Shown here in pieces: positions 127-51,100 of a DNA stretch of 51,100 bases (position 1 is its first letter; the number at the start of each line of letters is the position of its first letter). The notes under the pieces are model-generated. The model did not search any database and had not been told where the DNA came from. It saw only the letters and a program-made list of their open reading frames with translations. The stretch spans positions 1-51,100 of the forward strand of contig MU626400.1 in the NCBI GenBank assembly GCA_025603075.1, in the 5' to 3' direction. The position numbers were made by a program, and so were the translations under genes. Source of the DNA: Neoconidiobolus thromboides FSU 785 (Eukaryota > Fungi > Entomophthoromycota).

Positions 127-1187
127 GATATCCTACTTATTTACTTAGCAGTTATTAAAATTATTAAGTTTTTGTTATTTTTGTAAGATAAGCTGAGGTT
201 GATCTTTTGATTTTTGTAATTTCTATAAACTCTATAACTTTAATTAGAGTTATATTACTCTTTATTTATTTATTAAATACTGGATAACAATGTAACTTAT
301 TATTATAATTAATAAAATCTAAATACTTTTTGATACCTTGTATTTTTATTATTATTTTTATATTATTGTTTTTTATACTTTTTAAAGATTATATCTGTTT
401 TTTACTATCAACAATTAAATTATTAATTTTATTATTATTAATTATTTTTAAATAATCATATTGATTTTTACTTATATTGAATATAAAACTTTTAAATATA
501 ATTGAATTTTCAAACCAATTTGGATATTCATACAATTTTAAAGTATCCATAATAATTGACAAGTAACTTTGGTGGTAAAATTATGATAAGAAACAAATCT
601 CACACTATTATTTCAAATGAAATATTTTTTATAATTTAATAAGTTAAATGGATTTCAAAAAGTGATATAAAGAAGATTAATATCAAAGTTAATAATAACT
701 TTAGCGACATATATATTAAGTATGAATATAAAATATAGCAAAATTAAGGCTTATTATACTCATACAAAGTACATGAGCAATTAGACCTCCTCCTCTAGAT
801 TCCTCTTTATTGAGATTTATTTATTACTGATTCTGAAATAAACTTTACTTTTAAGCTCTACTGATTATGTTGATTTAGTTAACTTAACCTAAAGTATTAT
901 TTTCGCCTTAAATTCATCTAAGAAGGCTTTAAAACTTCTGGTTTTCGTTGGCCAAGCATTATGGTTACCTTGTCTTATCTTATACTACCTTACAAGTTGG
1001 TATATCACTGGGATTAAGGACTTTGAAGTCCTTGTGACTTTCATTTACGAATCTATCAGCCAAATCACCTAATGATTTTAAATTTTACACTTGTAGACAT
1101 GTTTTAAATTCATGAAAATAAAGTATATACGATTTATTTGGGTATAAAATAGCAAGGCATAAGTAACACAGTAACCAAAGTTTAGAC

Positions 1188-1487
1188 TTAGTATCCCCCT
1201 CCTCCCCCTCCCCCTCCATCACCACAACCCCCACTATCTCCACCACCGTTCCAATCTGAATAACCACCACTATTTCCAGCCCAAAAACCATCACCTCCTC
1301 CATTACCAGTAGAATAACAGCAACTAGTATTGGTAGTTTCATTATTTACGCTACTACTGTTATTTGATGATATACAATAAAAATCCCAAAAAGAAATATC
1401 AGTATTTTTATTGTCATTTGAAGTATCTTTAGTTTTGTTTTGTCTATCCATACGTTGCTTATCAGGCTCAGTAGTTATAGGATCCAT
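1188..1487 (-). CDS. Small protein with IxxEPx4M motif and Gly-rich (GGGxGG, Cys-containing) tail; divergent member of the Cys-rich array
   Basis: 99-aa ATG ORF. ITTEPDKQRMD matches the family motif; tail is CCYSTGNGGGDG...GGCGDGGGGGGGGY. Confidence 0.65.
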   Translation of the reverse strand: MDPITTEPDKQRMDRQNKTKDTSNDNKNTDISFWDFYCISSNNSSSVNNETTNTSCCYSTGNGGGDGFWAGNSGGYSDWNGGGDSGGCGDGGGGGGGGY

Positions 1488-1626
1488 TGAGTTTGTTTTG
1501 CAATGTTTTTTTGTATTTTTTGAGATATTTTATACTTGGATTTTAAAATGCGGCCAATTTAATGCTATTTCTTAGCTTCTATTAAGAATGCTGTCAATTT
1601 ACAAATTTATAAGGAATTAATCAAGC

Positions 1627-1733
1627 ATATGGGGATGTATTTTTGTGTTTAAAGATTTTCCTAACAATTTTTCCGCTCAAATAGGGCTTAAAAAATGGAA
1701 GAAGTAATGAAAACAAAAAAGACATCCACATAT
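1627..1733 (+). mobile_element. MITE-A copy
   Basis: ATATGGGGATGTATTTTTGTGTTT...CTCAAATAGGGCTTAAAAAATGGAA...ACATCCACATAT; terminal inverted repeats. Confidence 0.85.
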
Positions 1734-2182
1734 TTTGTTTTTTATAGTCACTTTATGCATGAGTTGAACTACTGGTTATAATGAGATTGATTTTATAATT
1801 TATTATAATACGTTGATTTTTTTAATATTCTATTTATCGATAGTTATCTTGTTTTGTTTTCATGCTAATTAGAATATCAAGTTTATAGTTTGTTAATAAA
1901 AAATAGATAATATAATATTATGGATTTAAGGCTTAAATTCAATCATAGAATGTAATCATTTGTTTCCATATGAAAAATTCTAAATCATTCAATTTTATTT
2001 AAGCCTATTTTAATTCATTATAATCACTATAAATTTTTTTAAATAGAGATTGAAATACTTCAATTTAATATTGTTATGTATAAATTTTTTTACAATAACA
2101 GCTAATATTTTTATCCTCAAAATATATTTAAAAATTAAAATCCAAAATTAAAATACCAATTAGTATTGAAAATAAAAATACT

Positions 2183-2286
2183 ATATGGGGATGTGTTTTT
2201 TCGTTTAGGAATTTTATTAACAATCTTTCCACTCAAATAGCGCTTAAAAATGGAAAACGTAATGAAGACAAAAAACATCTTCATAT
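2183..2286 (+). mobile_element. MITE-A copy
   Basis: (T)ATATGGGGATGT...CTCAAATAGCGCTTAAAAATGG...ACATCTTCATAT(A); TA on both flanks. Confidence 0.85.
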
Positions 2287-2374
2287 AGATTTGTAATAAA
2301 AACAGAATATCTGTCCTTTCAGTTATGATAATTTAGAAATAAAACTTTATCTACTCAATAATGTCCACTTTCAC

Positions 2375-3148
2375 TTAACCTTCATAGTTGTCACTATCAT
2401 TGTTCGCTTTTATATGACTATAACGTGAAAGTCCATTATGGTTATAATTATTTGATACTATATCATCATAACTAGGGGGTTCTTCATGGCTATGGGTATT
2501 ATCTCTGCAGCTTATTAAATGATTTTGAGAATCATATTTATTATGATAACCTTGATCATAATAGTCTCGAATATGCATCAATCTAATACTTGAATCATTT
2601 GTTATGTTATTGTTATCCCTATATTTAGTATCTTTATTTTTTAATGAATTAGAGCAAACAATAAAAGGTCTATTATTATTATCTATATTTGTTATTTTTG
2701 CTTGATTTTTTGCTTGATTACTATTGCTGCTTTCTGAACTATTTAACTTGTCTTTATATTCATAATAAACATTCATTCGTTCTTTTAATTTTTCTTCAGG
2801 AGTTTTTACCTTTGAAGCACTTTTGTTCTCATTTATAATCAACAATTTATTTTTGTTACTGTCATTGTAATCATACAATCGATATTCATTATTTTTAGTT
2901 TCTTTAAAACTTAATATTGTATTGCTAATGCTTTTACCAAAATGCAAATCCCGATATTCATAATAATAGGTTGGAGCAACTGGGGTTGAGTCTGAGGTTG
3001 GGATGGAGGTATATTTTACATTAATTTTACTTTGGTCTGTATCTTTAAATATATGTAATATTGAATTAACAGCTGAGTTTACTTTAAGTTTAAGTTCTTT
3101 ATTAGACTTGCTTTTTCCACTAGATACATTTTTATACTTTTCAAACAT
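2375..3148 (-). CDS. Hypothetical hydrophilic N/K/S-rich protein with C-terminal PPSY motif
   Basis: 257-aa ATG ORF, too long to be chance in this AT-rich DNA. No recognised domain; contains EEPPSYDD. Confidence 0.65.
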   Translation of the reverse strand: MFEKYKNVSSGKSKSNKELKLKVNSAVNSILHIFKDTDQSKINVKYTSIPTSDSTPVAPTYYYEYRDLHFGKSISNTILSFKETKNNEYRLYDYNDSNKNKLLIINENKSASKVKTPEEKLKERMNVYYEYKDKLNSSESSNSNQAKNQAKITNIDNNNRPFIVCSNSLKNKDTKYRDNNNITNDSSIRLMHIRDYYDQGYHNKYDSQNHLISCRDNTHSHEEPPSYDDIVSNNYNHNGLSRYSHIKANNDSDNYEG

Positions 3149-3736
3149 TATTAGTGTATTATATTAAAAAAAGAAATAATTTTTTATAAAGTTGTTTAGC
3201 TCCTTTTTATATTGAATTGATTACTATTACTTTAATTTATTCTTATTTCTCCCTTTCATATATTTATAGTCACCTTTTGAAAAACACAATCAAACTTTTA
3301 TGATTAATTGATTTGCTTTTCTAAAAAATTCAAGGCTAAAAACTCTCTCGTGATTATTTACACCAAAAGTTATCTTTTTTCTTGATCTACTTTGTGTATA
3401 ATTGATTTATCATATATGATATGAAGGTAATAAATATAATACAAATATTTTTATGGGTTTACTTAAATTGTAACTCAATTTTAATGTTTTATTAAATTAT
3501 TATTTTCAACTTTATTAAAATTATATAATATCAAATTTCTATATATTAAGATATTTTTACGTTATAGTTCTAATACACTTTTCGATTCCTAATTAAATGA
3601 TTTAAGCGTTATGACACTATGAATGTAATAAAAAGAATAATGGTTCAATAAATATTATCAATAGCTTAAAACACAGTAATAAATATTAACAAAACAATTA
3701 AATTAATTGAAAAAATATAATGTTTTTAGAGCTGTT

Positions 3737-3839
3737 TATGGGAGTATTTTTTTTGACTTCATCACTTTTTCCATCTTTTAACTGCTATTTGAGTGGAGAA
3801 ATTGTTAGTGAAATTCTTAAACACAAAATACGTCCCCAT
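3737..3839 (-). mobile_element. MITE-A copy
   Basis: Reverse-orientation match: TATGGGAGT...GCTATTTGAGTGG...AAATTCTTAAACACAAAATACGTCCCCAT. Confidence 0.85.
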
Positions 3840-5137
3840 CTGTTATCGATCACAATAGTTCCAAATTTAATAATACTATTTATACATAATATAATATATT
3901 GGATTTTATAATGATTGTTTCAATAAAAAACATCTTGTTTGTTATCTACATTTTTATCTGTTAATAAACATGTCTAATATGATAAAGAGTATGTATTAAA
4001 AATCAATAATATTAAGTTGATATAAATTCTACTTTTAAAACTAACAGTATAAATAAATGTACTTTTAATCCCATTCAACTGATTTATACCCTATTTCAGG
4101 TATTACCTCAATTACTATTAGATTTGATACAACTGATACTTTTTAATGTTAAATGAAAAGTATGTTAAATCCTTCTAATGTGAGTTCATTTGATATCAGC
4201 TATCAGCTATAATTAGCTCTTTGAGATATACTCAAAGACCAATGTAGATAATACTGTTGATATAGTTGGCAATAAGATTGACTTTGTTGATATATTTATT
4301 AATTATTATTGATTTATAGATCGTTATGTTATTACATTAATATTGTTCCCTATAAGTATGATAGTAATACTTCAGTTTACTAATTTATTAAAGATGAAAT
4401 AATATCTTTTCATTTAAGGTTTTAGTCAATTACTAAAATAAGCCAAATTTAAAAGGTAAATATAGAAAAGTGATATAGTTGAAACTATATAATTGAGTTT
4501 GTTCTTGTATTCACTTTAATTCTATTTATAAATAGCTATATCATAAATTATATCATATTGCATTAATAAAGCATTTAGTGTCTAAAAATTTATCAAAAAA
4601 TAAAGCATCAATTTTCTAAGAACCAGATTGCTGATAGCTTCATTATATCTACTCTTCTTTACTCTTAGATTGCGTTGTACAAATTATGATTTGACTCTAT
4701 AAAATTCAATTTACTTAAGTTTAAAGCAATCAATATCAAATTGATCAATTTTTCAATTTTTCATTAATTATCCTCTTTTCCTTTCTCTTCCTCCGCTAGC
4801 ACTCATACTACCTACCTTTCACTTTTTTAAACTTTTACTTACCTCCAACAATAAATAACTTGAAAGTTTAATCTCTTTAAAACCTTTTAAAAAAAACAAA
4901 GCATTAAAACGTCAGTGATTATAACTACTCACAAATGAATGTCATTAACATAAAATAAGCCACTTTATAACTTTAAAAGAACAAGGACAAATCCAACTTA
5001 AAATTATCTAAATTTAACTCTTATTATTATTAATAGAATAATATAATTAATTTTAGAACTTGAACAATCAACTTATAAGAAAGTATAAATAGCTTTAAAT
5101 AGATCCCAAGATTGATATTAAAAACTGCACAAAAAAT

Positions 5138-5575
5138 ATGGAAAAAGAAAGTATTCCGAATCCGCCTAATTACGATAAAACACAAAAGGTTCAACAATCA
5201 ACTCACTTTATGATCAATTCTACAGATAACTCTAAAGATATCATAAAAAATCAACCAATTTCCATGCAAATGGACCATATGAATTCAAGTTATAATACTC
5301 AACTTAATAAAAAGGAACAGGATATAAGGGAGAATTTAAATTCAACAAATTATTGTGCTTCTGGTTTATTTACTTGTCCAAGTAACAATGGGTCGCATTC
5401 TTGCTGTATAATCCCTTATTGCGATTGTAGTAGTTGCGGAAATTGTGATGATTGTTGTAGTGGTTGTGGTGATTGTGGTGATTGTTGTAGTGGTTGTGGT
5501 GATTGTTGTAGTGGTTGTGGTGATTGGGGAGAATGTGTAGTTTCATTTTTGAGTTGTTTTATTTGTGCTTGTTAG
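5138..5575 (+). CDS. Small Cys-rich-tail protein (CYSTM-like architecture) with PPNY motif and CCSGCGD repeats
   Basis: 145-aa ATG ORF. NPPNY, IKNQPISMQMD, Cys-dense C-terminal half ending in hydrophobic VVSFLSCFICAC. Confidence 0.85.
   Translation: MEKESIPNPPNYDKTQKVQQSTHFMINSTDNSKDIIKNQPISMQMDHMNSSYNTQLNKKEQDIRENLNSTNYCASGLFTCPSNNGSHSCCIIPYCDCSSCGNCDDCCSGCGDCGDCCSGCGDCCSGCGDWGECVVSFLSCFICAC
5450..5526 (+). repeat. Coding tandem repeat GATTGTTGTAGTGGTTGTGGT x3 (DCCSGCG)
   Basis: Exact 21-bp units at 5450, 5480 and 5501, with a 9-bp partial unit at 5471. Confidence 0.9.
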
Positions 5576-6316
5576 ATTGAATTTAAAAATCAGTTTGTTT
5601 GATCATATCTTATACAACACATGATTTGCTTAATATTTATTACAAAAAAACATAATTAATTGAATATTAAGATAAATCTACGCTGTTTTATGAGTTGGAT
5701 TAAGATTTTGATTCTAAAAAAAGTTGGTTTATTGATTATAATATAATTGCTATCTTGTTAATAATTTATTATTTATATAAGCATAAAAACAAATAAACAG
5801 ATTTTGTTAAATAGATTCTGAAGCATTTAATTTGAAATATTTCTATCAAAATTAAAATGTTATTTATGTGAATAAAAATAAAAGTATTTATAGTTAAAAA
5901 GTTAAACAAAATGATTTTTTAAGAGATAATAAACTAATAATTATATAGCAGTAACTAGACTTTTATTCTAATCCTTTAAAAACAACCTATTCTTTAACGA
6001 AAACTTAAATAAATACTGGTAAAAATTCTTGCAAGTATAGCATTTTCAGTCAATTATGGTTCTCTAAATCTCAACAGACTTGACTTTTATTTTAACATCA
6101 ATAATCGGCAAAAGTAATGAAAGAATTGAAACTTCAAAATTTTGTTCACTTTCATTGAAATTACTTTTGAAAAAAACATCTTATTGAAATTCTTTTCTTA
6201 AGACTCAGTCATGGTGAATTAGAAATACTACGTTCAGAAATTTAAAAAAATTTGTAATAGAATTTTAACAAATTTATTCATTAAAATCTATTATCTTATT
6301 TTATTTATAAATAGTA

Positions 6317-6422
6317 TTTAGGGGTGTATTTTTGTGTTTAAGAATTTTACTAGCAAACTTTCTGCTTAAATAGCGCCTAAAAGATGAAAAGAAGCAATGA
6401 AGCCAGAAAAAAATCCCCATAT
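6317..6422 (+). mobile_element. MITE-A copy
   Basis: GGGGTGTATTTTTGTGTTTAAGAATTTT...TAGCGCCTAAAAGATG...AATCCCCATAT. Confidence 0.8.
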
Positions 6423-6621
6423 ATAATATCCTGGTTTTTTGTATTATATATTCTTAAAACTTAGTATTAAATAAAGGAAAATATAATTAAATTATTATAA
6501 TGTTACATAAAATGAAGATAGAATATCATCCAATCTTTTTACAATTTATAAATAACTGCGGATAAATAATGTTCTATTTTTATAAAAGATATCTGAATAA
6601 TTTTCTAGAAGAACATTAGAC

Positions 6622-6710
6622 AGGGGCATTTCTATAGTTTCATCGTTTTTTGGATTTTTTAAGTGCTATTTGAGTGGAAAAATTATTAGTAAAATTAAAA
6701 AATTATTCCT
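6622..6710 (-). mobile_element. MITE-A degenerate copy
   Basis: Core AAGTGCTATTTGAGTGGAAAAATTATTAGTAAAATT is retained; termini are decayed. Confidence 0.65.
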
Positions 6711-6859
6711 AGATAGTGGAGTAAATTTCCAATACCCAAGTTTAGCCCTAAATTCATGAATAGTAGAAAAAATTCATCTTACACAAATACCTTGATTTCA
6801 AATAAAAAAGTACAAAAAGCGATTAATGAACATTAAACTTGGTTAAAAAAACATTCAAA

Positions 6860-7213
6860 ATGCAAAAAGGCAATAATTCAAATCCTCCCAGTTATAATGA
6901 AGTGACAGCAATTAAAGATCCAGAACAAGCTAAAATGAGTACTACAAGCAATACTCTAGATATAATAAATGCTCAACCAATTACTATGGAAATGAACTAT
7001 ATGAATTCAAATAAGGGGATGCAATTTAACAAAGGTACTGAAAGCTCGACAAATAATCCAAATTCAACAGATCAATATGTTTCTGGCTATACTACAAGAT
7101 CAAGTAATGTAAGTTCGTGTAATTGTTGCTCGAATGCCACAAGCATTTATGGTTGTATGGCTTTTGGACATTCTATAGGCCTTCTTTTAGGCCTTTGTTT
7201 TTTATGTTGTTAG
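6860..7213 (+). CDS. Small Cys-rich-tail protein, array member with PPSY motif
   Basis: First ATG is at 6860 (the track start at 6839 is TTG). NPPSY, INAQPITMEMN, tail CNCC...LLLGLCFLCC. Confidence 0.85.
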   Translation: MQKGNNSNPPSYNEVTAIKDPEQAKMSTTSNTLDIINAQPITMEMNYMNSNKGMQFNKGTESSTNNPNSTDQYVSGYTTRSSNVSSCNCCSNATSIYGCMAFGHSIGLLLGLCFLCC

Positions 7214-7614
7214 AATTTAAATCTAAATACCATTTTCTTCAATTGTATATTATACATAACCAAATTTACGCGTTGTTATAAAAACTATGTAATCAATTCA
7301 ACATTGAAATAAAACTATGATGATGTTTTAGTTTATAATCGAATTTACATTTAATACAAAACTATATGGATTGTTATTAGTTATAATTGACTGTATCATT
7401 GTTATTTTTTATTCAAGTAATGAAGATCAAATAACTTGATTTCAAATACTTTTCTTTTAGTGTACCAAGCGTTGGCTCTTTTTAGCTAAAGTTCCAATTG
7501 TATGTTTATTTTATTACATAGTTTTACTCATTAACCTTTTGAGTATTTCAGGTATTTTCATATATATAGAAAACAATCAAGTTCTTTCCTAAGTTGTTTG
7601 GGTTTGTTTAGTAG

Positions 7615-7880
7615 TTAAAACTTGACAATGTTAAATTAAAAAGTATCGATTATCCCATTTCTATATATATTTAATATGGTTATCAATGTATCAAAGTACC
7701 ATTATACTATATTTATGTATTATAACCAAACTGTTCCTTACGATTAACTACTTTTATGAAAGTCAACTTTTGTGAAGAACACGTTTTTACTCTTTAAAGA
7801 CTATTTATTGACTTGCGAGATTGATGGGCCCAATAAAAATGCTTAGTATTGAGTCACATCCTAACTTCAAAAAAATTTAA
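7615..7880 (+). mobile_element. Possible heavily decayed non-LTR (LINE) reverse transcriptase relic
   Basis: One frame with stops reads K..D...IDY-PISI ... TFMKVNFCEEHVFTL*RLFID, then NFKK.FN after a shift. This resembles YRPISL / GF...DHIFTL / DFKKAFD, with plausible spacing. Confidence 0.3.
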
Positions 7881-8243
7881 TATTTCTTCATGTACAATAA
7901 TTTATTTAAGAAATTCAAAAAACATTTTAAAAATAGATAAGATGGGGAGCTAGATGATATTCTATAGACAGTTATCTTGGTTCTTTAATAGGAATTCCAA
8001 TATGAAAGCTTTAGAAATAATATTTAAACGGTGTATAAATTATTGGAGATACTCGCGTACTAAAAAATTAAATGAAAATAACACATTTAAAGTTAATCAC
8101 TAGCATTCAATACTTTGTCCTACACTATTTATAAATCGAATACATGATCACTTATTTCAGTTTACATAGTTCAAACATTAAACATCCAAAACAGTACAAT
8201 CTTAAAATAAACAACGCAATAGTTTATCGTTTAAAAATACACC

Positions 8244-8345
8244 ATTAGGGGCTGTTTTTTTAGTTTGATTATTTTTCCATTTTTAAGTGCTATTTGAGTG
8301 GAAAAATTGTAATAAAATTCTTAAACAGAAAAATTCATCCTCATT
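8244..8345 (-). mobile_element. MITE-A copy
   Basis: TTTTTCCATTTTTAAGTGCTATTTGAGTGGAAAAATTG...AAATTCTTAAACAG...CATCCTCAT. Confidence 0.8.
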
Positions 8346-8610
8346 ATAATGTTAAAAAAATTAAAAAATGTATCAACCAAGGCTTCTGTTAGCTACAAAT
8401 ACCTAAAAGATAAAATTTATCTTATTAATGTATAAAATCAACATTTATAAAGATTTAGAAAAAAACTGAATAATTATTTAGCTTAGTTTTCTAAATTTGA
8501 CTAGTTAAGTAAAATATATCAATTAGTCTTATAAAAGCACAACTAATTCAAAAAAGAAGATTATAGAAAGGAACTAAAAGACATAAAGATTAGCTTACAA
8601 TACATAAAAA

Positions 8611-8802
8611 ATAAAAAAGACATTATCTTAAATCTTTCCAATTACAATAAAATAGCTAAAATAAACGTCCAGATCAATCCAAGTTCAACATTGCAAATTT
8701 TCCAGATATACCAAAAGCTCAACCAATAGCTACAAAAATGAACTATATAATTCTGAATGGTGTATAGATGCTCCTTTAACTATTTGCATCTATGTCTGCT
8801 GA
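8611..8802 (+). pseudogene. Decayed member of the Cys-rich array
   Basis: Start codon lost. Frameshifted pieces KDIILNLSNY / PDQSK / DIPKAQPIATKMNY align to the paralogs, and a shortened Cys tail (WC...ICIYVC*) lies in another frame. Confidence 0.75.
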
Positions 8803-9360
8803 AATTCAAATTTTAACATTATCTTTACCAGCTACATGTTACATAATGAGTAGTCTATCTAACACATTACTATAAAAACTATATAAGGACCTTCTTTTTA
8901 TTTCAGTGTTTTTGATAGTTTTCTGAATTTTACGATGATGAGAATAAAAAAGAATGAGCCAAGAGACATCTTCATATAACTAATTATACATTGAAATAAG
9001 ATAATGTTTTTTGTAGTTGTAGGAGTGCATATGTATTAAATGAGTCATCAACTGTAACTTTATAGTATTATTAATTAGATTTTTGTACAATCAATAAAGG
9101 GAAGTACTAATTTTGTTAAATGGGCCTTTAAATAACCCCTTTTAATTCATTAAGTATTAGTTTTTTATTATAATATAATTATAGCTTAAAACAACCATAT
9201 AACTTTAATCGATTAAATCTTTAAAAGTTCTATAAATTTCTTAATTTTAAATAAAATTATTTTTATTGTGTCAAATCAATACGATTTTCGGCTATATTAT
9301 CATTAGATTCAGGTTTAATTATTATACTTAGACTCTTAAATGTAGTATCAACATAGTATT

Positions 9361-9457
9361 ATATGGGAATGTATTTTTACATTTAAGAATTTTGCTAACA
9401 AATTTTCCACTTAAATAGCGCTTAAAAAATGAAAAAAGTGGTAAAATCAAAACATCC
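9361..9457 (+). mobile_element. MITE-A copy (right terminus clipped)
   Basis: ATATGGGAATGTATTTTT...TTAAATAGCGCTTAAAAAATG...AAAACATCC. Confidence 0.8.
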
Positions 9458-10191
9458 AGGTATACTATTTGGATAGTATCTTATGATTGTCTACGTCATA
9501 AAACTTAAACCTGTTTGTTTTTATTGTTTTCCTAAACTACTCACTTATTAAATTTCTTATTTAGATTATTGTGATGAGATATTCTAGCAATTTTATCCAA
9601 AAAAATTTCACTCAACAATGCTTAAATAATAGAAAAATAGTGAATTCAAAAGTCATTTCTATGAAATTTAAAATTTGATAGCCAAGACTAAATTATTTAA
9701 TTATATATTAATTTTATACCTTGACATTTTAGTCAGTATTTAATCAATAAATTTAATATAGTCCAATAAACATTCAAAAACAGATTTAACTATACTATTT
9801 GCGACAATGTTATTATTTAATCTTGTTCGAGTATTAAGAAAATATAAAAAATTCAAACATTCAAATAGTTTTTTTCAAGTTACAAAATTAGACTTTAAAC
9901 ATTAAATAAAGAACGTACTGCTATAATATTATAAAAAATGTTAAGCTATATAAAACTTTTATTGGTTATGAATGTCCATTTTGTAGCAATATTTATTTAT
10001 ATAGATTGAAGTTCTAGTATATTAAACTAGAAGAACATTAATTAAATAAATACAATTCTAATTTACAAATTTAGCTACCATTTTATTAGCATAATAAATT
10101 GATTGGTATTATAAAAAGATAATAAATTAAAAGTGATAACTATAAAAAACAACTATCTGACATCAAAGCTAACTCAAAATTCAGATAAAAG

Positions 10192-10557
10192 ATGGAAAAT
10201 ATTAGCTCTAATTCTCCAAACTACAGTGAAAAATTATTGATTAAACAGCCAGAACAAGCTAGGACGAGCTGGACAAACAGTTATTTAGATACAATAAAAG
10301 CTCAACCAAGCACCATAGAAATGAATTATACGACCCCAATTTCGAATTACGATGATAAAAGCCAAACTACTAGAAGCGAAAAAGGTTTAGAGAATGAATC
10401 AAGCTCAACAGGTCATTGTAGCTCTAATTCCCTCGAAGATTCAAGCAATAAAGGACCTTGCCTTTGTTTCCTTATTCCTTTTTATGATTGTGGGGGGTGT
10501 ATAGGCTGTGGGGAATGTATGCTTTGTCTTTTAACTCTTTGTGGTTGTAGTTGTTAA
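10192..10557 (+). CDS. Small Cys-rich-tail protein, array member
   Basis: 121-aa ATG ORF. NSPNY, IKQPEQAR, IKAQPSTIEMN, tail CLCFLIPFYDCGGCIGCGECMLCLLTLCGCSC. Confidence 0.85.
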   Translation: MENISSNSPNYSEKLLIKQPEQARTSWTNSYLDTIKAQPSTIEMNYTTPISNYDDKSQTTRSEKGLENESSSTGHCSSNSLEDSSNKGPCLCFLIPFYDCGGCIGCGECMLCLLTLCGCSC

Positions 10558-10645
10558 AACTTAACATCAGTATTTTATACAACTACATAAAATAACGCTT
10601 TTAATTTATTATAAAAGTTACAAAATTAATTTGATATTAAAATAA

Positions 10646-10752
10646 ATATGGGAGTGTTTTTTTTGACTTCATTATTTTTTCCATTTTCTAAGCACTATTT
10701 AAGCGGAAAATTTGTTAGTAAAATTCTTAAACACAAAAATACATCCCCATAT
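10646..10752 (-). mobile_element. MITE-A copy
   Basis: ATATGGGAGTGTTTTTTT...ACACAAAAATACATCCCCATAT. Confidence 0.9.
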
Positions 10753-10786
10753 ACTATATTTCATGGATTTGAATTTTCAATTCAAT

Positions 10787-10890
10787 ATATGGGAATGTTT
10801 TTTTATTTCATTATTTTTCTATTTTTTAAGCGCTATTTGAGTGGAAAGATTGTTAGTGAAATTCTTGAACATAAAAAAGCATCCCTATAT
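10787..10890 (-). mobile_element. MITE-A copy (tandem with the previous copy, 34-bp gap)
   Basis: (T)ATATGGGAATG...AAGCGCTATTTGAGTGG...CATCCCTATAT(A). Confidence 0.85.
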
Positions 10891-11079
10891 AGAGTTATAT
10901 GGGTTACTATTAATTATAATTCCTAAGGATATTGCTAGTTTGTTATTTGTTAGCTTATAAAAAAGGGGATCATTTTGCTAAATGAATTTTTACATGCCTT
11001 ATTAACATATCAAAGCTGGCTTTTTCATTAAAAACTAGAGTCTAATTTCCATATATGTAATTTGTTTTAACTGTATTAC

Positions 11080-11482
11080 TAGGTATTCCCAGAAATAATT
11101 TTTTTTGACAAATCTTAACTATAAAGGCTGTGGGAATTAGTAAAAATTGATTCTTGACAAAAATTCCAATATTTATAGCTAAAATAAATTTCAACTAAAA
11201 CAAACTTTAGGCTAAAAAAAAGTGAATTTGGTTTTAACTTTTTTCTTAAAGATAACTTAAACGGTGTCTTGTTATTAATAATAAGAAACTAAAACTTAAA
11301 ATATCCCATTTAATTAATAAAAAAATAAGTAGAACACTTTCAATTTAAAATGTCAGCTAAAACTGTTTATCAAAAGTTAATTTTCTATTAAAATTTTTTA
11401 TAAAATTAGATTTTTTCCATAGCTAATAGCTTGCTTGCTATCATTTTTAACTAAAAAAGAAAATTATTTCTGAGAATACCTA
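11080..11482. mobile_element. MITE-B: ~400-bp non-coding element with ~20-bp TIRs, bounded by TA
   Basis: Left end TA-GGTATTCCCAGAAATAATTT; right end reverse complement TA-GGTATTCTCAGAAATAATTT (1 mismatch). No ORF inside. Confidence 0.65.
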
Positions 11483-12011
11483 ATGTAAAAATTATAATTT
11501 AGTTTTTTATTTGATCTACTTTAATAGTTAAACCTTGGCCATATTAAATTGGTAAGACTTTCGTTTGCTCTATAGCTCTTTATTATTTAAGATAGTTTTT
11601 CAACTTATTTAAGTGCCGCTTCCATATAACTATATATTCTATTACAAGTCTCTTATGAAAAGCATCATTTTTATAAAATTGTAGTTTTTATCAACCAAAA
11701 TAAATTCATTTGGTTCTAAAATCAAATAAATGCGATTGTCTTAAGCTTCTCAACTTATTTGCATAATTTGCAATAAACTATTAGGAAATAAACAAACTAA
11801 GATATTTGTTTACTTGATTTAGAATCAAAACCAAAGTAAATTAAACTATCAATTAAGAACAGTAATTTATTAAATAAAACTAAAAGCTAGGAAATATGTA
11901 CAAACAAAATTATATAAATAAATGAAATGTAAAGTTGATTTTTTATTTAATACAATAGTCATTCAAGGATACAATTTAACTTTTATAAAACAGTAGTAAA
12001 ACAAAAAAGAA

Positions 12012-12260
12012 ATGGTGCAACGAGAAAATGATAGCTCAATTCCCACTACTGCTATAGATGTACAACCACAAGAAACAAACATGCATAAAAATACTGAGGA
12101 CACAGCGATAAGAACCAACCCTTTTGATAGAAGGGATTTATTAGACTCTCCATTTTGTTGCTTGTGTAACTGTGTTAGAACTGTTTATTATAAGATTCAT
12201 GGCTGTTGTGCTATATGCTGTGTTGCAAATATATTATTTTGTTGTGGTGATGATAATTAA
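12012..12260 (+). CDS. Small Cys-rich-tail protein, divergent array member
   Basis: 82-aa ATG ORF. IDVQPQETNM motif; tail CCLCNC...GCCAICCVANILFCCG. Confidence 0.75.
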   Translation: MVQRENDSSIPTTAIDVQPQETNMHKNTEDTAIRTNPFDRRDLLDSPFCCLCNCVRTVYYKIHGCCAICCVANILFCCGDDN

Positions 12261-12437
12261 TAAGGGACACAATTTTATTTTAATAAAAATGATTTCAATC
12301 AAGAATTTTGTGAATTGAGTGTATTTTGTTTATTTATTATAATTTTTAATTTTTAAAACCATATATTCTATATTAAAAGTTTATTCAATCCATATAAAAA
12401 TAAGAGAAGAATATATTTCTATTCTATAAATACCAAC

Positions 12438-21431: not shown

Positions 21432-21542
21432 AACATAAAAATCATTATAAATAAAATATAATACGAAAAAACAAAACTTGAAACCATTTTTGAACAACTT
21501 TAATTGTTAAATTTAAATAAACCTTTTAATAAAAAAGTTAAA

Positions 21543-24168
21543 ATGGACAACCAACAAGACTTAAATAATAAAAACAACCCTACCCACTCAGGATGGGTTC
21601 AAGAACCGCAAGCTGCTCAAGCTTATGCGGATCCAAATTATTACTATTATCAACAAAATTATCCTGGATATGAAGCTGCTTATGCTGAATATTATAATTA
21701 TTATCAACATTATCCTCAAAACTTTAATTATCAAGCTCCTCCCCCTCCTTCATATCCAAATCAACAATACCAACAGCAAGTGTTTCAACCTAATTTTTTT
21801 CCACCTCCACCGATGCCTCGAGCTAATCGACCAGCTCAAGCTACAAATAACAATCCAGGGGTTCCACCACCACCGCCGCCAGCTAATGACATTCCGCCAC
21901 CGCCACCAGAAGAAGATAAATTAAATGGGAATGTAAGTTGGAATCAAACATCAAAAGGAGAAAATTCAACGAAGGGATTTAAGAAATATGGAAGTGTAAA
22001 ATATGAGTATACTGAAAATTCAGGTTCAAAGTTTAAAGAGAATAAATTTAACAGAAAAACCAAGTTTAATGCTAAAGTTAAAGGGTTTCATAGTCCAACT
22101 AGTAGTACTATTATGAATGGGCCGTATAAGAAATTTAGCGAAATTAGTATTAGCGATAGTGGTTTAGCGAACACGTAAGAGTCATATATATTTTTGTTTC
22201 TTATAAATAACCTTTAAAGAAATGATACTTTTGAAGAAAATACCAACCTTATTGGAGGTAACTTTTTTGAAAAAAAAAAAGCAATTTATTCATTTTTATA
22301 GTCACTGAAAATGAAACGATATCTTTAGATGGTAGTAAAAACCCAAAAAATAATAATATTGGTAAGTTCATTTGTAACTTGTTAATATATTATGTACTAA
22401 TTTTTTTTATTTAGATAGCAAGAAGTAAATTTTAATTGGTTTAAGTTATCTACTTAACTTTACATTTATTAGCGATGAAGAGCTACCTGATTACGTGAGG
22501 TATTTTATAATAGCATTATTATTTTAACAAGTATTTATAATCTTATAGGGCATGGGTACAGAAAATATATGAAGCATATCCTAATGCAAAAAGTAATGGC
22601 ACTGCACAACAGATCATATATGGTGCTATCAATAAAGTGTACCAAACGAATAGCATATGGAGCGTCAATTGGAGCAAAAAGCCAATACCAAAGTAAAACT
22701 AACTCCATTTGATAATACAACAAATTTAATATAACCCATAGGGCAATTGTAAAATTATTTGCAAATGTGCAAGTAATTACTGGTAAAAAAGCAGGGTATA
22801 TCATTTTTTTAATAATTGATTAAATTTGTTTATCAAATTTGTTTAGAAAAGCTAAAAGCAAAAGGCAAAAAAGTCCTAGTCCACCTATTATTGAGAATGT
22901 CAGCCATGAAGAGCTACAAAAAAGACTAATGAGACAAGCGAGATTTGCCCAACCTTTAGAGCCTGAAACTTTACCACCTCCTCCTACAGTTGCAACAGAA
23001 CAGGTAGATATATTGATTAAAATTTGCTGAGGGGATCCTAATTTTTAAAATAGCATATGATGGACGTTATTGATTGGGATAAAGACACAGTTATTGGAAC
23101 ATGTACTAACCTCGAGAAGAATTATTTCAGACTTACTAGTGTAAAATTTAATAAATATGTGAAAACCATTTTACCTATATGTTTTTATAGGCACCTGATC
23201 CATCCAAAATACGTCCAGTAGAGGTATTGAAAAAGACATTGAAACTTTTAGTTAAAAAATGGGAAGAAAATAAAGATTATACGTATATTTGTGATCAATT
23301 TCAATCAGTTCGTCAGGATTTAACAGTAAAGTATTTTGAATTATAAAAATTAATTTAATTAAATTATTTAGGTACAAAGAATTAAAAATAACTTTACTGT
23401 TTATGTTTATGAAACTTTTTCAAGAATTGCATTAGAAAAGGTAAATATTTTCTTATTATTATTAGAGTGTATTTATTTAATGTTATTATTAGAACGATAT
23501 AGGAGAGTTTAATAAATGTCAATCCCAATTAAAAGATCTCTATGAATATGGGATTGAAGGAAATGAAAACGAATTTATTTGTTATAGAATGCTCTATTTT
23601 ATATATACTAGGAGCTCAGCAGGTAATTAAAACAATGAACTAATGATAAACAAATATTAATATTATAATAGAAATCAAAAAAATGATATCAAACTTAACT
23701 GAACAGCAAGAAAAAGATGAAAATATAGCCTTTTCATTAAAAGTACTTCGAGCACTTAATACTTCTGAATTTTATACCTTTTTTAGGCTATATAATAGTG
23801 CTACCCAATATTGTAAAATTATCATATCTTTCTTTTTAGAAAGAGAACGATATAAGGCAATGGATATTATATGCATGGCGTAAATATTTATATTTTTTAA
23901 AGTTATAATTACAAATATTAACTTTTTAATTAACAGCTATCTCCCCGATGTCACTTTAGATTATGTAAAAGATATAATGGGCTTTTTAGATGAAGATGAA
24001 TGTATTAATTTTTTAAAAAGTTGTGGAATAACATTGTTTCAATGCCCAAAAGCTTTACAGAATGGTAATCAAAATGTTTATAGGTTTCAAACAAAACCAG
24101 TTAGAAGTATGGTAAAAGCTAGGTTAAATAAACTTTCTAAGGTCGATATTAAAGGACAGCTTAATTGA
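21543..24168 (+). CDS. THP3: SAC3/GANP/THP3-domain protein (THP3/LENG8-like), multi-exon, with Y/Q/P-rich N-terminus
   Basis: Spliced core reads IGTCTNLEKNYFRLTSAPDPSKIRP...[52 protein letters not shown]. First ATG is 21543. Confidence 0.85.
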
Positions 24169-50700: not shown

Positions 50701-51100
50701 TTAAATAGACTTCAGTTGATTGTCTGGTAACATAAATCCATTAATAGGCTCACCATTCAAACATAATTGATTAAAAGAATTAGCTTTGTCAATAAACAGT
50801 TGAATTTTTTCTTGTTCAGTATTTCGAACAATTCCATTTTCAATTAAATAAATCAATTGTTCTCTAGTTTTAAATGCTTGATCTTTAATATACTTATATA
50901 TTTCATTAAAAAAATATTCGATTGGATTCATAAAAATTGAATAAGGTGGGTAAAAAATTAATTCAATATTATATTGATTTAAACTGTTTTGGAATTCCAG
51001 TTGATTCGGACCAAAGCCATGAAAAGATGAATTATCTAAATAAACAATGCAATTTTTGAATTTCATTAAATTTTCATCAAAAAACTGGACCATTTTTTCA
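50701..51100 (-). mobile_element. IS630-Tc1-mariner (DDE_3) transposase C-terminal part, truncated by the window edge
   Basis: IVYLDNSSFH...IELIFYPPYSIFMNPIEYFF matches the D-N..H / PPYSP.LNPIE catalytic motifs. The frame is open to the window end. Confidence 0.85.

Follow-up and report, generated by a model that had tools for sequence, protein, structure and literature searches.

A tandem array of small, mostly Cys-tailed proteins sharing an I-x-x-[QE]-P-x4-M motif in Neoconidiobolus thromboides

The scaffold MU626400.1 of Neoconidiobolus thromboides FSU 785 (assembly GCA_025603075.1), analysed here over its entire 51,100 bases and called the window below, carries a tandem array of intronless genes whose products of 82-145 amino acids (aa) share a motif of the form I-x-x-[QE]-P-x4-M and mostly end in a Cys-rich tail. 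The units of the array recur about every 1.7 kb and go back to local duplication, followed by divergence, in a single AT-rich fungus. Three are clear paralogs (g2, g3 and g4, the core), one is a dead half-copy, and g1 and g5, on the flanks, are far-diverged members. Our best explanation, to which we give a rough probability of 45%, is that by analogy the products may work like the CYSTM/CYSPD proteins, with S-acylation of the Cys tail attaching them to a membrane and a PPxY motif docking the ligase Rsp5. What is new here is a species-restricted, fast-evolving variant with a conserved motif of its own; the working logic is already known from CYSTM/CYSPD.

The array and its shared elements

A regular-expression scan of the six-frame translation found I-x-x-[QE]-P-x4-M five times in 48,888 residues, where residue shuffles gave an expectation of 0.18, and all five occurrences fall in g1-g5. 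A sixth instance, PKAQPIATKM, with P instead of I at the first position, lies in the dead copy. All six same-spaced instances claimed in the sequence-only reading, in five genes and one pseudogene, were thus recovered in place (Table 1).

The tails are similarly restricted. Cys-dense stretches (at least 6 Cys per 30-residue window) occur in only 5 of 1,323 stop-to-stop fragments, four of which are g2-g5. These four proteins hold 7-22 Cys each, never more than two of them consecutive, and their Cys-rich hydrophobic stretch finishes no more than 5 residues from the C-terminus. The most hydrophobic 19-residue Kyte-Doolittle window (score 1.4-2.0) is made up of the last 19 residues in g2, g3 and g4, and of residues 62-80 of 82 in g5. 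The g2 tail, widened by a CSGCGD-type repeat, ends in ...SCFICAC, that of g3 in ...GLLLGLCFLCC, that of g4 (10 Cys) in ...CLLTLCGCSC and that of g5, which has four CC pairs, in ...FCCGDDN. The tail of g1 is Gly-rich (GGGD-like), with 4 Cys in the entire protein. The earlier description of Cys-dense, often hydrophobic tails in most members fits g2-g5, g1 being the exception.

The +1 frame right after the g1 stop (1085-1190, minus strand) encodes a short hydrophobic, L/W/C/Y-rich and Cys-bearing stretch that resembles the g3 and g4 tails. Either a shift of frame close to the G-rich 3' end of g1 may have cost the gene a tail of this kind, or the stretch may be a chance product of T-rich DNA. A link of the Gly-rich g1 tail to the Cys repeat of g2 was also considered and found no support in DNA-level tests.

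The heads of the members are polar and N/S/T-rich (5-9% Pro, 5-9% Gln). The N-termini contain no hydrophobic stretch and, given their polar N/S/T-rich composition, should carry no signal peptide. The proteins are predicted to be disordered: AlphaFold2 run on the core alignment returned no fold (mean predicted local distance difference test score (pLDDT) 43, predicted template-modelling score 0.10), and the structure models of a language-model atlas have a pLDDT of 0.45-0.51.

The N-terminal NPPNY, NPPSY and NSPNY noted earlier are present in g2, g3 and g4, respectively, with PPNY and PPSY at residues 9-12 of g2 and g3 and SPNY at residues 8-11 of g4. Five coding sites (7015, 10213, 10279, 12084 and 12152) read differently in RNA contigs of another, differently labelled source than in the reference, giving K52N in g3, S8P and S30G in g4, and H25Y plus one synonymous change in g5. 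The single-nucleotide polymorphism (SNP) at 10213 (T>C, S8P) converts NSPNY into NPPNY in the RNA of the other strain. Since this creates PPNY in g4, the PPxY would be ancestral in all three core genes, and a [PL]PxY motif stands at residues 8-12 of the predicted disordered head in g2, in g3 and, in the other strain, in g4. Neither g1 nor g5 has a PPxY, and the DNA upstream of both likewise has no remnant of one.

Relationships among the members

Judged by their sequences, g2, g3 and g4 are clear paralogs, with pairwise BLASTP E values of 1e-10 to 1e-16 (1e-16 for g2 against g3) and 30-40% identity across about 90 residues. Entire core units align as DNA, including the upstream and promoter DNA and a 3'-flank element, and the units stand 1.5-1.8 kb apart from start to start.

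The dead copy, between g3 and g4, is matched by the core hidden Markov model (HMM) at E 7e-4. It has ATA at the position of the start codon and LSNY in place of PPxY. Ahead of the motif its alignment with the other units shows a 1-nucleotide (nt) gap, and a stop comes 8 codons beyond the motif. Past about 8750 its 3' half shows only background DNA identity to the other units.

The earlier view of one tandem family holds for these four units, the only ones alignably homologous. g1 and g5 are tied to the family by motif, build and position alone. Neither was detected by the core HMM in the six-frame translation of the window, and neither has DNA likeness to the core (z at most 1.8); the sole DNA-level signal outside the core is between the heads of g1 and g5 (z 3.2). 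An additional core-HMM match at 269-388 on the minus strand is I/K/N low-complexity sequence and was discarded. g5 lies on the same strand as the core, one period to its right, and two independently rare features, motif and Cys tail, meet in it at this following position of the array, so that a chance origin is very unlikely. g1 is inverted, at the left end of the array; its case as a peripheral member is weaker than that of g5 and rests on the motif at residues 4-13 together with a motif-registered BLASTP match to g2 (E 7.6e-4).

Expression and gene models

RNA contigs from two differently labelled sources lie colinearly and without joints on g3, g4 and g5. On g3 they extend over 6845-7321, 6848-7295 and 6875-7319 in three runs, on g4 they span 10121-10580 at low depth, and on g5 they span 11887-12303 in four runs. 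Transcription of g1 and g2 was judged from word shares instead. The RNA runs contain 0.35-0.52 of the sampled words of 1050-1600, the g1 region, and 0.28-0.45 of those of 5000-7300; the g3 transcript explains about 0.20 of the latter, and the share above this value indicates that g2 is probably transcribed too. A lack of transcripts had been named beforehand as an outcome that would overturn the proposal; contigs and word shares instead speak for transcription of the genes. The 3' end of the g3 contigs (7319-7321) coincides with the conserved 3'-flank element at 7287-7319, and the poly(A) site of the repeat unit probably lies in this element.

In runs X5, X7 and X8 the RNA depth is zero across intergenic DNA, 7464-8227 included, and across the dead copy. 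Another RNA-labelled run, X6, differs from these three in having long contigs (6700-8277 and 8425-9049) over intergenic DNA and the dead copy, which suggests read-through transcription or carry-over of DNA in the library.

The public annotation includes g1, g3, g4 and g5 and omits g2. In its place stands an antisense open reading frame (ORF) at 5370-5546 on the minus strand, encoding a His/Asn-rich 58-aa product. Because g2 is homologous to g3 and g4, the plus-strand ORF at 5138-5575 is the real gene, and on the sequence evidence the antisense ORF is to be taken as an artefact of the g2 repeat. Several signs of coding accompany the array: frames of 82-145 codons stay open in DNA of 25% GC, insertions and deletions come in multiples of three, and the g2 repeat has expanded in frame. 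The single unit without a start codon, the dead copy, is also the one with a frameshift and an early stop.

Search for relatives

An exhaustive HMMER profile search of 1.84 billion representative proteins returned g3 and g4 themselves only, with no bridging sequences. Word-index searches of a 5.8-billion-protein collection with g3, g5 and a five-sequence alignment found only the scaffold's own proteins, and degenerate-pattern scans of metagenome contigs and viral contigs yielded no relatives. The best reading of these results is that the family is species-restricted and fast-evolving.

A language-model feature search with g3, g4 and g5 offered leads, not proof, since its scores of 0.76-0.89 lie within the range that shuffled proteins often reach. 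The two clusters nearest to g4 are also those nearest to g5: one unnamed, from giant viruses (0.89 for g4, 0.84 for g5), and a basidiomycete CYSTM cluster (0.86 and 0.83). Clusters bearing PF12734 lead the named set for all three queried members.

Discussion

According to our preferred explanation, the polar N/S/T-rich head would remain cytosolic, and the extreme C-terminal Cys-rich hydrophobic segment (ending in CC, CxC or CC-G-D-D) would be S-acylated, possibly partly membrane-inserted, and so anchor the protein. The PPxY of the core members, at residues 9-12, would dock the WW domains of an Rsp5/Nedd4-type ligase, so that the protein would be a substrate of the ligase or would recruit it. 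The block D-x-I-x-x-Q-P-x4-M-N-Y, the only strongly constrained part of the head, would most simply be a second short docking motif for a putative partner.

The comparison is with the CYSTM/CYSPD family (PF12734), which we take to include yeast Cpp1/Ybr016w, Ydl012c, Cpp2/Ydr210w and Cpp3/Ydr034w-b, S. pombe Uvi15, plant PCC1 and CDT1, and human CYSTM1. By definition, CYSTM proteins are small and have a disordered polar head rich in Pro and Gln. A linker that varies connects a short conserved element to the C-terminal helix, which is rich in Cys and has an acidic residue behind it; the helix has 5-6 Cys, 3-4 of them consecutive as the hallmark Cys patch, and the whole module measures 35-40 residues (PMC2804304). 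The yeast members attach to the plasma membrane via palmitoylation of the Cys segment and not by a transmembrane helix, their degradation depends on Rsp5, and Ydl012c has a PPXY and binds Rsp5 (PMC10840359). The array products resemble them in size (82-145 aa, below 150 aa), in the Cys-rich hydrophobic module at the extreme C-terminus (g2-g5), up to a point in the predicted disordered polar head without a signal peptide and the order of short conserved block, variable linker and Cys module, and in having a PPxY in some members, as Ydl012c does in a family that is linked to Rsp5, often multi-copy and stress-linked. From the shared two-part build and the pairing of PPxY with a Cys tail we infer the same working principle. 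Also counted in its favour are the paralogy, a motif and Cys tails that are far commoner than chance allows and confined to the array, transcription, the signs of coding, predicted disorder, the hydrophobic C-termini, the ancestral PPxY, the CYSTM clusters nearest to g3, g4 and g5, and the yeast precedent.

Several observations weigh against this explanation. No Pfam family, CYSTM (PF12734) included, was matched at E<=10, whether by whole proteins, by tails or by motif-to-end pieces, HMMER filters being liable to hide very weak matches, and the feature-search scores are no higher than shuffled sequence can produce. g2-g5 lack a patch of 3-4 Cys, having at most two in a row, and the terminal acidic residue is found in g5 only (...CCGDDN), since g2, g3 and g4 finish in Cys. 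g1 and g5 are without a PPxY and g1 is without a Cys tail. Constraint appears weak: Nei-Gojobori ratios of non-synonymous to synonymous divergence (dN/dS) for the core pairs are 0.46-0.86 at a near-saturated dS of 0.7-1.1, and four of the five coding strain differences are non-synonymous. Finally, the motif block of the dead copy (8698-8749) retains 77% DNA identity to g3, as well kept as in the live genes; either a single event exchanged the 3' half of this copy, or something at the DNA level also preserves the block.

Beyond these points the family differs from CYSTM in its N/S/T-rich rather than P/Q-rich head, in the longer spacing of the core members with their linker of about 45 residues, in the I-x-x-Q-P-x4-M-N-Y motif, which is not described there, and in its confinement to one genome. 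The CYSTM-type Cys module proposed earlier is accordingly borne out in build and in the feature-search neighbours of g3, g4 and g5, and contradicted by the Pfam model and the hallmark Cys patch. The label of a candidate new system was an overstatement, since the combination of PPxY, palmitoylated Cys-rich C-terminus and Rsp5 dependence is already published for yeast CYSTM/CYSPD (PMC10840359).

Other two-part or adaptor proteins are less close. Among the PY-motif adaptors of Rsp5/Nedd4 are yeast Bsd2, Tre1/2 and Ear1/Ssh4 and mammalian NDFIP1/2. Like these, the array members would present a cytosolic PPxY in the disordered part of a small membrane-associated protein, here as a prediction. Unlike the core members, which have a single PPxY each, no transmembrane helix beyond the Cys tail and no cargo-binding domain, the adaptors contain, as a rule, several PY motifs and are equipped with true transmembrane helices or SPRY domains. 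LITAF/CDIP1 and BRI3 also combine a Pro-rich or PPxY head with a Cys-rich, membrane-associating C-terminus. They rank lower in the feature-search lists, and the zinc ribbon of LITAF with its membrane-inserted loop (CxxC...HxCxxC) has neither a pattern nor a Pfam counterpart in the array.

The products might instead be fast-evolving orphans without a specific conserved role, that is, weakly constrained transcribed ORFs of a birth-and-death array in which motif and PPxY are leftovers of descent. We consider this somewhat unlikely. It would agree with the lack of relatives in protein collections, metagenomes and viral contigs, with the one dead unit, with the mostly non-synonymous strain SNPs and with the low expression of g4. 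The DNA comparison points the same way: the motif block is best kept at 65-79% identity, the remaining coding DNA, at 44-61%, is no better kept than the 3' flank (61-68% among g2, g3 and g4), and linker and tail change at about the pace of flanking non-coding DNA. Split by region, the core pairs have a dN/dS of 0.20-0.80 (motif block), 0.44-0.99 (linker) and 0.36-0.99 (tail). Against leftovers of descent stands the fact that the frames are still open at a dS of about 0.7-1.1, that the motif block has the lowest proportion of non-synonymous differences (pN, 0.13-0.30), and that the motif persists in g1 and g5 with different codons though the remainder is unalignable; moreover, three features known to act jointly in CYSTM/CYSPD occur together here. 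The family is under weak constraint outside a few short elements. A dN/dS near 1 had been named in advance as a reason to give up the proposal; the observed 0.46-0.86 neither reaches that value nor, at this saturation, stays clearly clear of it. As for the exactly spaced motif, no other block of this young paralog family is as well conserved; it is not an independently recurring element.

A role as metal-binding stress proteins, metallothionein- or CDT1-like, with Cd, Cu, Zn or Mn chelated close to or at a membrane by the tail thiols, above all those of the g2 CSGCGD repeats, seems unlikely. The g2 tail does look the part: in-frame repeat expansion has given it 15 Cys in its last 45 residues (about 33%) in a tandem CxxC/CxC arrangement, as in metallothioneins and other Cys-repeat chelators. 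Plant CDT1, a CYSTM protein, moreover gives tolerance to both Cd and Cu, and for yeast members there is a link to Mn (PMC2804304; PMC10217909). The CxC/CxxC clusters that run throughout a metallothionein are found in the g2 tail alone; the other members are far poorer in Cys and hydrophobic at the end, g3 having only 7 Cys, in a hydrophobic stretch, and the family has a lengthy non-Cys head with linear motifs. No Pfam metallothionein family was matched, the best being an insignificant MSSP match (E 0.41) among tail and motif-to-end pieces, and metal binding would leave both the PPxY and the internal motif unexplained.

It is improbable that the array encodes true, very diverged homologs of the CYSTM superfamily rather than analogs. 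Size, the C-terminal Cys-rich hydrophobic module, the disordered head and the conserved element with a variable linker would suit this (PMC2804304), as would CYSTM clusters being the nearest named clusters for three members and the CC-G-D-D at the end of the g5 tail, which resembles a Cys patch with an acidic residue. The profile search found no sequences to bridge the gap, PF12734 gave no match, no member has 3-4 consecutive Cys, and the core linker of about 45 residues alone exceeds the 35-40 residues of a whole CYSTM module. With no match to the Pfam profile, no Cys patch and (except in g5) no acidic residue, the family is not to be classed as CYSTM.

That the array is not protein-coding, its transcripts being non-coding or its genes annotation artefacts, is hardly credible: small ORFs, missing homologs and disordered models would allow it, but in three paralogs the frame has stayed open through in-frame indels, protein similarity reaches E 1e-16, a 117-codon frame would stay open by chance in 25% GC DNA with a probability of about 2e-5 (estimated from base composition), and the dead copy displays what lost constraint looks like.

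An extension of the preferred CYSTM/CYSPD-like explanation, which we regard as improbable, is that the block would be a previously undescribed linear docking motif and the array a lineage-specific, fast diversifying set of S-acylated membrane tethers joining Rsp5, bound by PPxY, to a second partner, bound by the block, and thus acting as new-born ligase adaptors. If so, turnover of such adaptors in the array would follow shifts in stress or in the host.

Surroundings of the array

The GC content of the scaffold is 22-35%, and its other genes are ordinary eukaryotic ones, among them Utp14 on the right of the array, a BEACH/WD40 protein, an ABC transporter and a remnant of a Tc1-type DDE transposase. 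Copies of a repeat resembling a miniature inverted-repeat transposable element (MITE) lie in the spacers of the array. Their summed depth in RNA-library contigs is 1,300-11,500, and many of these contigs continue into unrelated sequence, which indicates that the repeat is abundant genome-wide and embedded in many transcripts. Between g1 and g2, an annotated N/S/K-rich ORF of 257 aa (2375-3148, minus strand) has PPSY 30 residues before its C-terminus; it has no Pfam match and, apart from PPSY, no likeness to the array family. Elsewhere on the scaffold, a disordered P/Q/Y-rich ORF of 224 aa (21504-22178, plus strand) contains PPPPSY and long Pro runs and has no Pfam match.

Table 1. Features of the array and of its surroundings in the window
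Feature	Position	Strand	Remarks
g1	1188..1487	-	99-aa ORF opening directly with the motif (MDPITTEPDKQRMD); ITTEPDKQRM at 1449-1478
g2	5138..5575	+	145-aa core member, 22 Cys; PPNY at 5162-5173; IKNQPISMQM at 5243-5272
In-frame tandem repeat of g2	5425..5541	+	codes for the CSGCGD(C) repeats of the tail; Tandem Repeats Finder, periods 9, 21 and 30 nt; repeat family D1
g3	6860..7213	+	117-aa core member; PPSY at 6884-6895; INAQPITMEM at 6965-6994
Dead 5' half-copy	8611..8764	+	PKAQPIATKM at 8711-8740
g4	10192..10557	+	121-aa core member; SPNY at 10213-10224; IKAQPSTIEM at 10294-10323
g5	12012..12260	+	82-aa peripheral member without PPxY; IDVQPQETNM at 12054-12083
Conserved 3'-flank element	7287-7319, also 5650-5682 and 8974-9006	+	about 75 nt past the stop; repeat family D10
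MITE-like repeat copies	1619-1745, 2158-2289, 3737-3828, 6311-6425, 6612-6709, 8236-8344, 9357-9467, 10634-10760, 10779-10915	both orientations	array spacers
Tc1/mariner-type DDE_3 transposase, C-terminal part	50701-51093	-	Pfam E 6e-9; at the scaffold end

Significance

The reach of these results is modest: they open no long-standing question and hold little to surprise a specialist in fungal small proteins. They do correct a gene model, as g2 had been overlooked and an antisense ORF annotated instead. If the proposed CYSTM/CYSPD-like mechanism is true, the paralogs, a compact set that differs in the presence of PPxY, in having a Cys- or a Gly-rich tail and, in one case, in a repeat-expanded tail, would serve for dissecting the functions of the parts. 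The array would then show a protein of this kind, with a lipid-anchoring Cys tail and PPxY docking of a ligase, being born, or diverging beyond recognition, in a single fungal lineage.

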